64,000 nucleotides of DNA from Camelus dromedarius (lineage: Eukaryota). Below the pieces are notes generated by a model that saw only the letters and a program-made list of their open reading frames with translations, was not told the DNA's origin and made no database searches. The position numbers were made by a program, and so were the translations under genes. Below are positions 1 through 23,909 of this stretch, piece by piece. Each line of letters begins with the position of its first letter. Within the stretch, counting starts at the first letter, position 1. Where the stretch lies: positions 73,222,001-73,286,000 of the forward strand of contig NC_087444.1 in the NCBI RefSeq assembly GCF_036321535.1, in the 5' to 3' direction.

Positions 1-117
1 GAGCCCCCTTCCCTTCTCCATATCTCCAACTCTACTGTCAACCTCCATATCCTTCCCAGTGCCACCCTCAGCCCACCCCAAACCCCAGTCATTCCTCCCA
101 CCCCTGCCCAGCCTCAC

Positions 118-261
118 AGTTCATGTGGATTTGCTGGCCCAGTTCAATCAGTTCCATCTCCGTGGGCATGTACCCCATTGTCCTCATGAGATTCCCCAAA
201 TCCTTACAGGAGATGAACCCATCTCGGTCTTTGTCAAATTCAAGAAATGCTTCCCGGAGCT
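118..261 (-). CDS. CABP5: CABP5 coding exon 3 (EF-hand 1); gene continues beyond the window start
   Basis: Translates (E)[47 protein letters not shown] with EF-hand loop DKDRDGFIS. Acceptor ctttcag, donor GTGAGG, 144 nt, phase 1-1. Confidence 0.96.
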
Positions 262-768
262 CTGAAAGTTGAGAGAAGAACTTTGGGGAACTTGAAACAG
301 TCAATGTGGGAGAATAGCATTCCTTGAAACTATCAGTGTGGCACTGACTGGAGATTCCTCAAAGAAGAATACATTATAAAAACCCAAAATTTCAAAAAGG
401 AGTGATGTAGGAAATGTGTTAGCAAGAGGAAAATTTTCTGAGACCACTAAATGACAGCACCGAAGTCCTTCACATTCTTGGGTGAAGTTATGGGAAACTT
501 CAGAACCATCAAGGGAAAAAACAACAATTTTGGATGCAGCCTAAAACTCATGTGTCACTCCTGGATCTCTAAGACGCTTGGGGATGGGTATGCCTTCTAA
601 ACACTTTGGAAGCTACTTAAGCTGCCACAAAATCACAGTTGAGTGAGAAGAGAGAGTGATGTAAAATTTTCACGTCAAGGGATTTGTACTGAAATGCACA
701 GAGGGACAGAGAGCAGGTAAGCAGGTAGATGGCAATATGGGGCATTTGCGGGTGAGAGTATTTATTAC

Positions 769-799
769 CTTCAATCTCATCTGGCCCCAGTGGTCTTTC
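769..799 (-). CDS. CABP5: CABP5 coding exon 2 (31-nt mini-exon)
   Basis: ERPLGPDEIE+G. Acceptor ttcctttccag, donor GTAATA; phases join exons 1 and 3. Confidence 0.95.
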
Positions 800-2011
800 C
801 TGGAAAGGAATGTGGTGGGGAGGGGATTTGGAGACAGGGTCAGGGATCCACATTGACTTCTCCATCCTTCACGCATCCTTTTCTGTTTCTCTTCCTTCCT
901 TGCTCACTCCCCTCCACCACTCTCACCTTCGTTCTCCCATCTCCTGATTCCCATTCCATGGCTATTTTCTCCTCCTGCTCTTCCTCATCGCTTCTCATTT
1001 CCTCTCTCCCATCCTTCAATCTCAGTATCTCCCCTCCTGCCTTTCCCAAATAGACATCTATCCCATTGTGCTGAAATGGGTCTTGGTCTTGGAGGCCACG
1101 GAATCCAGTCCCCGCCTTCTCCAGATGAAGGAAGCCAGACTGGGAATCATAGCTAACATATTCAGAGTGCTGACTGTGCCAGGCTTCCATAATCGTTTCA
1201 TTTAAACTTCAGAACCACTCTGTGAGGTGAAGCCAAATATCATTCCCATCTTATTTAAGGGGAAGCCGAGAGACAGAAAGGTTAAGGAACCTGCCTGAGG
1301 TCACACCGCTTATAATGGCAGACCCCTTTCCCAAAGCAGGGAGATAGTAAATCACTCCCTAGAAGTCATGCAGCAAGTCAGGTGCATTGAGAGCTGGGAT
1401 TTGAATTCAGGGCTCTTGGCTCCCAGGTCAGAATTCTTTCCACTCTGTTCCATTGACTCTTTTTTCATCTGCCGCCATGTTTTCTCCTAAGGGTTAGAAT
1501 CTGTTGGGTGGGAGCAGTGCTCAGTGGCACCCAAGCAGGATGGTGACTGCCAGCAAGATTAATTCCTAAAACTTTTAAGAATTTCCAATCATGTTACCAC
1601 CCACTCCTGGACAAACCTGAAGGGTCAGATTTGGGTACATGGCATGCCAACTGGGAAATTCTGTCAACCACTGGCCCCTTTCACCCCCTATCTCCCTTTA
1701 TCTGTGCAGACTTTCTCCCAGCTTCTCTTTCTTACTCTCCCCCAACCCCAATCCTCTCTCTGTCTCTTTGGTGATCTTAAAGACTAACAATTAAAAGTCT
1801 GCACACTGGAATCAAGCAGACCTGGCTCTGCCACCTATTAATTGTGTAAGCTTAAAGCAAGGGACTTCATGACTCAGAGCCTTAGTTTCCACATCTAGTA
1901 AAATGGGAATGAAAGGATTATGGACCTCATGAGGCATTCTGAGGATTAAATGGCATCAGGGATGCAAAGTCTGGGCACACGGCAATGACTTATAAGTGGC
2001 AGTACTGTTAT

Positions 2012-2086
2012 CACCACCACCACCACCATCACCACCACCACCATCACCACCACCACCACCATCACCACCACCATCACCATTATCAC
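2012..2086. repeat. (CAC/CAT)n trinucleotide microsatellite in CABP5 intron 1
   Basis: About 25 imperfect CAC units read directly. Confidence 0.95.
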
Positions 2087-2378
2087 TGTGGTGCCCAAAG
2101 AAAGGAATGATGGTGATCACAACTGTGACATCTTCCCGGTTCCCCTGTTAATTCTCCTCCTTCATCTTCCACTTTCTGGTCCTGATTTCTAATTCACTCT
2201 CACCCATTTCACTGCCCCAGGTGTCCCCACTATGCTCCCTGGAATTCTTCTGCCTTCTTGGTTGCTGCTCTCCCACCTGCTCCCCCTTTTCCATCCCACC
2301 CGCCGTGTCCCTTCTTTTGCCTACATCCCAGCTCCCTTTGCCCTGCCCACCATCCTTCCCCATTGTCCACCACCTCAC

Positions 2379-2441
2379 CCGGTGTTTCTCAGCGATGCCT
2401 TTTCTTAAGAAGATGCAGGCAGGGCCCATGGGAAACTGCAT
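2379..2441 (-). CDS. CABP5: CABP5 coding exon 1
   Basis: ATG at 2441-2439, MQFPMGPACIFLRKGIAEKHR (the CaBP5 N-terminus), donor GTGAGG. Confidence 0.96.
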
Positions 2442-2757
2442 GGAGTGGGCAGGGCAGAGCTCACCAGGTGCCAGTCTCAAGATGGCTCCCCCTCCTTCCT
2501 GTCCCCTTTGGTGGCTCAGGCTCCTTATCTTCTCTACCACTCCTTTGCCAACTCTTCCTGCCTCTCTTGGCCTCTTCCTCGGTCCCCCAGCTCCCTAAGA
2601 GCTGTGACAGCTGGGTTGGAAATCTCTTTTCGGGTTGGGGAGGGATCAGAGTTGTTCCTGCCTCCCCATCTGGCTCGAGTGAGGCTGGAGGGGGAGCCAG
2701 TGTCAGGCTCTGACCTTTTATCCCCAGAATGGAATTGGAAGGATAGTTTTGAAACGA

Positions 2758-2876
2758 GGATTAGAGCAGAGGGCATCCATTCATACCATGTTCCAACAGG
2801 CACATTGAGTGCTGTGTAAGCCTGGCCTCGGCTGCCCTTTGAGCAGGGGAAGATGGAGAGGACATGGCCTGGATTA
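2758..2876. promoter_or_regulatory. Two GGATTA/TAATCC K50-homeodomain (OTX2/CRX-type) sites upstream of CABP5
   Basis: GGATTA at 2758-2763 and 2871-2876, about 320-430 bp upstream of the ATG of a retinal gene. Function is inferred. Confidence 0.5.
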
Positions 2877-3784
2877 AAGAGCTCTTGAGTAAGTCAGGAA
2901 TGTGTGTAAATGAGAATGCAAAAATTACACGACAACCTGATTTTAGGAATAGGTATACGTGGTGGTTAAGAGAATGGTATTTGCTCTTCCTCTGCTCATC
3001 TCTCCCCTTCCTTTTTTTTCTGAATAATTCAGGGGGAGGGGCAAAGTAGGCATCCATGCTGCTGGGGGTGGTCAGAGCCCAAGGAGGCAATCCTGTCTGC
3101 TCAGGATGGGGAGGGGACTGGGGGCCATCAGTGTGGGGAGCCAGTTTCAGTAAGGTAGTAGAGTGGGGGGGAGGCCCCGGTGGGGGCAGCATGGTGCAGA
3201 CCGTTGGGGCCTGGGAGGGGGAGGATGAGTCCATGGAGCTCTGTGGTGTTGGAATGGAACTGAAAGCATTGGCATGTGCTCATGGATTTCAATACAGAGA
3301 GCCCAGATGTCACTGTGTGTGTAGGACACTGGAACATAGATTCTCTAAGAGGACACGGAAGCAGCGGCACCCTAGTGTTAACGAACACCTCTGGCATCCA
3401 GATCTTGACTTCTAAGTACCATTCTCTGCTAAATAGGAGCCAAGACTCCTAGAAGAAACAGCTGATTCCATGTCTGGAGCAGGACAAGTATTACAAGATG
3501 AGCCTAAAACATCTGGCACCATAAAGCAGGAATGTGCTCAGTTATGGGGACAGGACAAAAGAACACAGAGCTCAGCTTTAAGAAGCTCCACTGGCCATAT
3601 CAGGGGAAATTTGAAAATCAAACTAACAGTAACAAGTTATATAGGACAAGTGGGAAACCAGGAGTCCATACAAAGATAAAGATAAGCGGAAAGTTTGATA
3701 ATATTTACATAGCTCAAAGGATGTCCTCACAAAATACTAATTTCAAAAGAGGGTCACTTTATAGTGGGAAAACCTAGCAGACAC

Positions 3785-3933
3785 TTTCTTTTTTGTTTTT
3801 ATTTATTTTTTGTTTGTTTTTGAGGGAGGGGCAATTAGGTTTATTTATTTTTTAATGGAGGTACTAGGGGTTGAACCCAGGACCCAGGACCTCGTGCAAG
3901 CACGTGCTCTGCCACTGAGCTATACCCTCCCCC
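3785..3933 (-). mobile_element. tRNA-Ala-derived SINE (camelid type)
   Basis: Minus-strand head GGGGAGGGTATAGCTCAGTGGCAGAGC...GGTTCAACCCC with A/B boxes and an A-rich tail; internal CCCAGGA duplication. Confidence 0.85.
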
Positions 3934-5597
3934 TACATTGGCAATTTCTTAAATGATTAAAATGATCATCAGTAATGTAACAAATCAAAATGATGGATTT
4001 CAATTCATACTGAATAATGAATTTTTACTCCAGCAAAGCTCCCTGGCTGCTCTCCTGCATGCTCTTCCCAGAGCCCTCCCAGCATCATCTCCCCCTGATG
4101 GCTTCCGACAATTTTTAGGACAGGATTTACACCACAGGGACTCCGGTCTCCGCCACTCCCCTCAGCTCCAGGCTCATCTCTGCAGGGGCCAAGTACTCCA
4201 GCAGTCAGCGTGATCTTTTCACCCCCAGACCTCACTGTGCCCTTTCTCTGCCTGCGGGATAAGGTTCCACACCCCTGCAGGGGCACGCAGGGCTCTCCAC
4301 GAGGCACTCTGGTTGGGGGGTGAGCGCAGGGTCACCTGCAGACTGCCCAGACCAAATCCTGGCCCTCCATTTCTTAGACAGTGAACCTGGGGAAAGTAAC
4401 TTACATCCCTGTGCGTCAGTGTGTTCATCTGCTCAATGCGGATGATAAAAGCAGCTACCTGGGGGGGTGTCATGAGGGTCATTGGTAAGCGAGGATGTCC
4501 CTGCCCAACCCTCCACGTAGAGCTGGACAGTCTGGGGGTCCCCAGACACACAATATTTAACACCTAGTCAAACAAATATTTTCCCTTAAATGCTTTATTT
4601 GAACTTAATATAAATGCACATTAACTTGCCCCTCGTGCTGTATCAGGATGCAGCTTTCAGCTATGAAAAGCAAGCATGTTTACAGTCATGCAGTCCCAGT
4701 GGGATTTAGTCATTCTCCCACCTCCAGTCCACCCCAGGGACAAGAAGCCCAGCTAGGCAGCTGCTGCCCTTAGTTCACTAAGGGTCATCGGGGCGCCTTT
4801 CTCTGTGACTCTCTGCCTTGTTCCTCATGATCACAAAGTGGCAGCCCCAGCTCCCACCATCATACCCACAGTCAGGGCAGGAAGCAAGGAAGGGCTGCCA
4901 CAACTGGATCTCCTTTTTGATCAGGAAAAACAGCCCTGACCACACTCCAGGCACGGTGCTATATGGGCCAAGGAAGTGAGGATGAGTAAAACCAGTGCAT
5001 CCACTGCCTGCCCTCACAGGGTCAGGTCTGGAAAACTGCGCTGACGATTCAGAGGCCAGGCCTGGTCACCAGATGGCAGGTGGCAGAGGTGGGTATCTCA
5101 CAAAAGTTCTGGCATGTACCGTCTCCCAACAGGATGGGGACCATACCTGAAAGACGGGAGGCCCAGGGCCAGGCTGCTGAGTCAGAACCCCGGTGTGCTG
5201 GCCCTCCCAGTGCCCTTGAGGAGCCACCGTCTCTCTCTGTGGTTCCTCATCTGGGAAACAGTGCTCTGGGCAGTGCCTATGTGGTAGGATTGCTGGGAGG
5301 GTAAATGAGTTAATTTACAGAGTTTAGATGGCCACCATCCAATAAAATAGCCATTTAACCACATGGAGCAATTTAGATGAAAATAAATTAAAATCTTCTA
5401 GTCCTCAATCACACCGGTCCCATTTCAGTGCCTGACAGCCACGTGTGGACATAACACACTTCCATCACCGCGCGATCTCTATGGAAGGTGCTGGTTTAGA
5501 TGGTTCCTGGCACACAGTTACACGCTCCCGAAGTGTGAGCTCTCAGAGCTGCGCCCGCGGAGCCCAGCACGGACACAGAGCAGGTGTTCAATAATTA

Positions 5598-5603
5598 TTT
5601 ATT
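5598..5603 (-). terminator. LIG1: LIG1 polyadenylation signal AATAAA
   Basis: tttatt on the + strand, 180 nt past the LIG1 stop codon. Confidence 0.8.
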
Positions 5604-5782
5604 GGGGAAAAAAAAGACTGAACCCCAGACCCCAGCTTAAAGCATCCCCACCCCCCCCCCACACACACCAGACTCTCGGAACCCACGCAGACTGCAACAC
5701 CAGATGTGCTTAGCCACAGAGGTGACGCCCCTGGGTCCCCTCGGCCTCTGCCGCCCAAGCCCCCGGGGAGAGCAGAAGTCAT

Positions 5783-5866
5783 CTAGTAGAAATCCTCCGG
5801 CTCGGAGTCCGGCTCTGCGCCGTGCTGGTTCTGAATCTGACTTTGCTTCCTGTACAGACAGGCCAC
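5783..5866 (-). CDS. LIG1: LIG1 exon 28 (terminal coding exon)
   Basis: [27 protein letters not shown]. Acceptor cctcag, stop TAG at 5785-5783. Confidence 0.95.
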
Positions 5867-5911
5867 CTGAGGCGAGAGCGGGGTGGGGGCGGCTCAGAAG
5901 GCCTGGGGCTA

Positions 5912-6163
<252 letters not shown>

Positions 6164-9499: not shown

Positions 9500-9847
<348 letters not shown>

Positions 9848-23386: not shown

Positions 23387-23523
23387 NNNNNNNNNNNNNN
23401 NNNNNNNNNNNNNNNNNNNNNNNNNNNNNNNNNNNNNNNNNNNNNNNNNNNNNNNNNNNNNNNNNNNNNNNNNNNNNNNNNNNNNNNNNNNNNNNNNNNN
23501 NNNNNNNNNNNNNNNNNNNNNNN
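23387..23523. other. Assembly gap (137 N)
   Basis: N run inside the L1. Confidence 1.
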
Positions 23524-23749: not shown

Positions 23750-23909
23750 NNNNNNNNNNNNNNNNNNNNNNNNNNNNNNNNNNNNNNNNNNNNNNNNNNN
23801 NNNNNNNNNNNNNNNNNNNNNNNNNNNNNNNNNNNNNNNNNNNNNNNNNNNNNNNNNNNNNNNNNNNNNNNNNNNNNNNNNNNNNNNNNNNNNNNNNNNN
23901 NNNNNNNNN
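23750..23909. other. Assembly gap (160 N)
   Basis: N run inside the L1. Confidence 1.

Follow-up and report, generated by a model that had tools for sequence, protein, structure and literature searches.

The dromedary LIG1-CABP5 interval lacks PLA2G4C at its ancestral position and is collinear with the spacers of other laurasiatherian genomes

The region examined here is a stretch of 64,000 nucleotides from the genome of Camelus dromedarius (the window; RefSeq assembly GCF_036321535.1, contig NC_087444.1, forward-strand positions 73,222,001 to 73,286,000), in which the genes CABP5 and LIG1 adjoin one another and from which PLA2G4C, encoding the phospholipase cPLA2-gamma, is missing at its ancestral position between them. 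The first coding exon of CABP5 (2379-2441, minus strand), read directly from the sequence, begins with an ATG at 2441 and runs for 21 codons, encoding MQFPMGPACIFLRKGIAEKHR, to a GT donor; it aligns with the start of the CABP5 gene in narwhal, pig, sea lion and bat loci, and more CABP5 exons lie on the minus strand near 780-810 and 120-260. The last coding exon of LIG1 (5783-5866, minus strand), likewise read directly, ends in a stop codon at 5783-5785 and is collinear with genes called at other loci that bear the domains DNA_ligase_A_N, DNA_ligase_A_M and DNA_ligase_A_C. Its poly(A) signal, AATAAA at 5598-5603 on the minus strand, is placed about 180 nucleotides downstream of the stop codon, and the flanking sequence aligns to the 3' end of LIG1 in other laurasiatherian loci. 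The distance from the LIG1 stop codon to the CABP5 ATG is 3,341 bp (2442-5782, no strand assigned); this interval, comprising the spacer and the LIG1 3' untranslated region (UTR), is the ancestral site of PLA2G4C, and it holds neither a single N nor any PLA2_B-like exon. Because the only two runs of N in the window (23387-23523 and 23750-23909) both fall inside one LIG1 intron, the interval is free of gaps, as the original prediction had stated for the approximately 3.1 kb between the CABP5 ATG (2441) and the LIG1 poly(A) signal (5598), and two intact genes adjoin here with no assembly gap between them.

The identities of both neighbours are well founded. Proteins bearing the name calcium-binding protein 5, from a wide range of mammals, match the exon 1 peptide MQFPMGPACIFLRKGIAEKHR with 83-96% identity over exon 1, and the exon at 92-358 matches EF-hand families, so that a CABP5-specific N-terminal exon is found together with EF-hand exons. 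On the other side, LIG1 exons match DNA_ligase_A_M (1e-10 and 8e-9) and DNA_ligase_A_C (4e-3), and the exon at 9500-9847 is far closer to DNA ligase 1 in the PDB (expectation value, E, of 1e-27) than to ligase 3 (E 5e-6); adenylation and OB-fold exons are thus both present and closest to ligase 1. Public gene models fuse or mislabel these neighbours in places: a hyena protein named "DNLI1 ligase, partial" groups with CABP5, and a marmot-like model consists of the CABP5 N-terminus fused to PLA2G4C.

References for a search for remains of PLA2G4C were reached from mammalian CABP5 proteins by way of their loci, one hare PLA2_B exon there leading to the cPLA2-gamma family, and local searches of the window covered positions 1-5962 and 6002-64000. 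Translated searches (tblastn) with the last three exons of hare PLA2G4C gave no significant match (E of at least 0.27), and 58 representatives of the cPLA2-gamma family, compared with the whole window, revealed no PLA2G4C exon (E of at least 0.03). Nor did 12 full-length orthologues, which bring the PLA2G4C proteins compared to 70, yield anything better than E 0.5 in the dromedary spacer or in those of nine further laurasiatherian loci. A profile hidden Markov model (HMM) built from 32 PLA2G4C orthologues, with lagomorphs left out, was run over 6,537 stop-free pieces and found no exon, its best E being 6.5. Both approaches performed well on positive controls: the golden-mole protein recovers 12 exons of the hare locus by tblastn, at E 1e-6 to 1e-50, and the profile HMM recovers 11 hare exons at E of 5e-8 or below and 13 at E of 0.01 or below. 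With the controls positive, tblastn and the HMM detected no PLA2G4C relics in the window or in the nine other laurasiatherian loci, which bears out the earlier claim that no phospholipase-like exons lie between CABP5 and LIG1 and confirms the absence of the gene from this site. Two candidate matches were set aside. The one strong match obtained with the 58 representatives corresponds to the CABP5 portion of a fused gene model and not to PLA2G4C, and a tblastn match of residues 152-208 of protein P0090 to window positions 2848-2702 (E 0.11) was judged to be noise, being reproduced neither by mammalian orthologues nor by the profile HMM.

The arrangement from which this one departs is preserved in several outgroups. 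The tarsier carries on one strand LIG1, 3.5 kb of spacer, a PLA2G4C gene of 39.6 kb, a further 5 kb and CABP5, so that 48.1 kb lie between the last position of LIG1 and the first of CABP5. In hare and rabbit, a gene with the PLA2_B domain, PLA2G4C, ends 2.9 kb upstream of CABP5 (in hare the gene spans 25.4 kb), and in a tenrec, a member of Afrotheria, 7.7 kb separate the end of PLA2G4C (PLA2_B) from CABP5. For tarsier and tenrec the comparison was of gene order alone, and the hare flank stops short of LIG1. PLA2G4C has also been placed in the LIG1-CABP5 gene context in mouse, rat, rabbit and Tasmanian devil (PMC4557993). Since Afrotheria and a marsupial side with Euarchontoglires, the arrangement with PLA2G4C is ancestral and that of the window is derived. 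The human and mouse order, on which the original prediction was based, thus proves to be the ancestral one, with PLA2G4C at the syntenic position in tarsier, hare, rabbit and tenrec. As an aside on the gene itself, PLA2G4C proteins of many non-anthropoid mammals (among them hare, rabbit, golden mole, tenrec, tarsier, squirrel and deer mouse) are 770-840 residues long and carry about 170 additional C-terminal residues (P0074:590-770, P0136:640-842, P0139:600-796; in hare, L004:4700-7071). Against the Pfam sea-anemone actinoporin family this extension scores 24.4, 22.7 and 19.9 bits, just below the cut-off of 25, and the match is lacking in two of the five PLA2G4C proteins tested.

The adjacency of LIG1 and CABP5 is shared by eight other assemblies from three orders. 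Between the end of LIG1 and the beginning of CABP5 the distance is 4.0 kb in narwhal and beluga, 2.9 kb in pig and warthog, 3.2-3.3 kb in three pinniped assemblies and 4.45 kb in the vespertilionid bat Cnephaeus nilssonii, as compared with 3.34 kb in the dromedary window. The dromedary spacer is collinear with those of narwhal and beluga, with 92% of its length covered at about 78% identity, and is likewise collinear with those of the bat, suids and pinnipeds, with 47-61% covered; non-artiodactyls jointly cover 79% of it, and every alignment to the eight loci follows the same order. From a pangolin contig, which does not reach LIG1, only the CABP5-proximal 1 kb of the spacer could be compared. 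The loss was originally ascribed to "this lineage", a scope that these data do not bear out, in that cetaceans, suids, pinnipeds and a bat have the collinear LIG1-CABP5 spacer as well. Because independent deletions would not leave identical retained flanks, the pattern argues for a single shared deletion, or a few in quick succession, that would predate the ancestor shared by artiodactyls, carnivores and bats.

The content of the spacer is unexceptional. A transfer RNA (tRNA)-Ala-like short interspersed nuclear element (SINE) occupies 3790-3950 on the minus strand, within which ARAGORN makes a tRNA-like call at 3856-3929 on that strand; five diverged copies of the element are found elsewhere in the window. 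This stretch forms an alignment gap against narwhal, pig, sea lion and bat, and the SINE is a later, lineage-specific insertion. Apart from the SINE, the spacer consists of unremarkable intergenic sequence that is about 72-78% conserved in other laurasiatherians; the earlier description of the interval as holding only repeat relics is loosely right. A CABP5-proximal promoter block (2442-2778, minus strand) is the sole part of the spacer that can still be aligned to lagomorph DNA; blastn matches window positions 2778-2012 to hare L004:9676-10391 at 71% identity and to rabbit L005:9667-10402 at 72%. Within the adjacent CABP5 intron 1, a (CAC/CAT)n microsatellite at window positions 2004-2086 occurs at the same site in hare (L004:10377-10670) and rabbit (L005:10374-10750), in both of which it is several-fold longer than in the window. 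Contigs from RNA sequencing of "reproductive system" samples (X15-X18) contain 27-29% of the sampled words of 2442-5600; some of the spacer is thus expressed as RNA, perhaps within an extended LIG1 3' UTR or by read-through.

The interval is very probably the ordinary laurasiatherian LIG1-CABP5 spacer left behind by an ancient and complete deletion of PLA2G4C, and the competing accounts of the adjacency fare less well when set against the same observations. That a mis-join or collapse during assembly simply dropped the gene is extremely improbable: the interval lacks any N, and 97-99% of its sampled 31-mers are contained in 14 DNA runs from nine studies and in a second organism (three of these nine read studies are not flagged as a possible source). 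A mis-join in particular is very unlikely, because eight independent assemblies of other species agree in showing LIG1 next to CABP5. An equally slight chance attaches to the converse proposal, that the human and mouse order is the derived one, produced by an insertion of PLA2G4C into the LIG1-CABP5 interval of Euarchontoglires; nothing was found in its favour, and against it stand the location of the tenrec gene directly upstream of CABP5, the LIG1-CABP5 context of the gene in Tasmanian devil (PMC4557993) and the occurrence, among the best 120 of 503 homologues of degu PLA2G4C, of orthologues in marsupials, a monotreme, reptiles, a bird and a fish. The variation of spacer lengths between 2.9 and 4.5 kb might be taken to favour a deletion confined to the lineage of this species, or one repeated independently in different orders, and the report of elephant without PLA2G4C at this site (PMC4557993) makes at least one separate loss outside Laurasiatheria plausible. 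However, the differences in length fall at gaps in the alignments of the sort that repeat insertions usually produce, orthology and collinearity of the spacer extend in three orders from the LIG1 3' UTR to the CABP5 promoter, and independent events would be expected to leave differing retained flanks; we therefore consider deletions of this restricted or recurrent kind highly improbable.

The original prediction allowed that the gene had been deleted or relocated, and relocation would imply that an intact or diverged copy resides elsewhere in this and other laurasiatherian genomes. One conservative prediction of PLA2G4C at a non-syntenic site in dog has been reported (PMC2644713) and speaks for such a move, although that prediction could represent a paralogue or a retrocopy. 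The survey of homologues offers relocation no support. The best 120 of the 503 homologues of degu PLA2G4C, which descend from 100% to 34% identity, include sequences from rodents, lagomorphs, tree shrew, primates, marsupials, echidna, reptiles, a bird and a fish, together with five afrotherian insectivore-grade species (tenrecs, golden mole and elephant shrews), and not one of these 120 is laurasiatherian; an orthologue would be expected at roughly 55-60% identity, well above the 34% at which a fish is reached. Short or unnamed fragments of PLA2G4C also include no laurasiatherian and resolve to beaver-like, ape, pika-like, elephant-shrew-like, tarsier, rat, vole and hamster-like sources. The annotated proteomes of laurasiatherians are represented in the protein collection, since CABP5 and LIG1 of many of them are found there, and the collection thus draws on many annotated laurasiatherian genomes. 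On this indirect evidence we regard relocation as improbable. The same survey returned, among its best 120 of 503, no PLA2G4C from elephant, manatee, hyrax or a xenarthran, while tenrecs, golden mole and elephant shrews are present; together with the placement of elephant among the species having LIG1 beside CABP5 and no PLA2G4C in that context (PMC4557993), this gives a hint that Paenungulata lost the gene independently, in a second event.

An ancient deletion of PLA2G4C would have proceeded along the following lines. An entire ancestral PLA2G4C gene, of the 25-40 kb that it spans in living outgroups, would have lain between LIG1 and CABP5 on the same strand, and one large deletion, or a few, would have removed it completely, exons and introns alike, no later than in the ancestor shared by artiodactyls, carnivores and bats; a spacer of some 3-4 kb would have remained. 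This spacer would then have passed to every descendant lineage, with later change presumably limited to neutral substitution and the insertion of small repeats, the SINE at 3790-3950 among them. Several points weigh against this account or restrict it. The breakpoint is only bounded: the original prediction had placed it inside the CABP5-LIG1 interval, which is trivially true (2442-5782). A blastn comparison of the spacer with a 45-kb hare locus (10 kb of upstream sequence, PLA2G4C and the stretch from there to CABP5) showed similarity in the promoter and exon 1 of CABP5 alone, and the outgroup DNA compared comes from the CABP5 side. The branch on which the loss occurred is only bounded, Eulipotyphla and Perissodactyla lying outside the sample and the pangolin contig ending short of LIG1. 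Finally, the homologue survey covers only the best 120 of 503, and a diverged or relocated copy outside the regions searched, of the kind predicted in dog (PMC2644713), is formally conceivable.

The absence of PLA2G4C from laurasiatherian genomes is already on record in part. The gene is labelled "absent" in cow in a figure legend (PMC3017005) and is listed among those that dog lacks at the syntenic site (PMC2644713), and sheep, dog, horse, panda, elephant and pig have been drawn with LIG1 adjoining CABP5 (PMC4557993). The original prediction thus read correctly an absence that had already been recorded; the scope of the loss is wider than was originally supposed. Our search of the literature on loss of PLA2G4C in Laurasiatheria and in mammals brought up no publication that presents it as a loss shared by a whole clade. 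We advance only tentatively, as a proposition with slightly less than an even chance of being correct, that the complete excision of PLA2G4C happened once, on the stem either of Scrotifera or of Laurasiatheria as a whole, and that no earlier description presents it in this way. One more laurasiatherian without PLA2G4C is to be expected and is by itself of small general importance for genome biology. A clean deletion apparently common to artiodactyls, carnivores and bats would be usable as a clade marker, and cPLA2-gamma appears dispensable across a large part of Mammalia. If the excision was indeed a single event on the stem, it would constitute a rare genomic change marking the clade, and the "PLA2G4C" protein reported in cattle and other livestock would have to be another, cross-reacting protein. 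In a study of bovine endometrial cells, which over-expressed the human complementary DNA (cDNA), the endogenous protein was identified solely as a 61-kDa band that "cross-reacted" with antibody to the human enzyme (PMC1868772), an assignment that calls for another look. Functions assigned to endogenous "PLA2G4C" in tissues of cattle, sheep, pig, horse and dog merit re-reading.

In relation to known systems, the interval occupies the LIG1-CABP5 position held by the PLA2G4C genes of tarsier, hare, rabbit, tenrec and golden mole, from which it differs in having no resemblance to them at the DNA level (hare) or at the protein level. With the clade-wide unitary gene losses that comparative genomics has revealed in mammals, whole-gene deletions common to a clade, it shares an outgroup gene at a conserved position, intact flanking genes and a shared junction. 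The deletion here is clean and has left no pseudogene with inactivating mutations, so that coding decay cannot be used to date it. The closest parallels are the records of the missing gene in cow and dog and the depiction of LIG1 beside CABP5 in sheep, dog, horse, panda and pig (PMC3017005, PMC2644713, PMC4557993), which involve the same gene, site, neighbours and strand. Whereas those are passing, species-by-species mentions, the dromedary locus adds one more species and a spacer collinear across three orders, excludes exon relics with the aid of positive controls, and points to one shared event.

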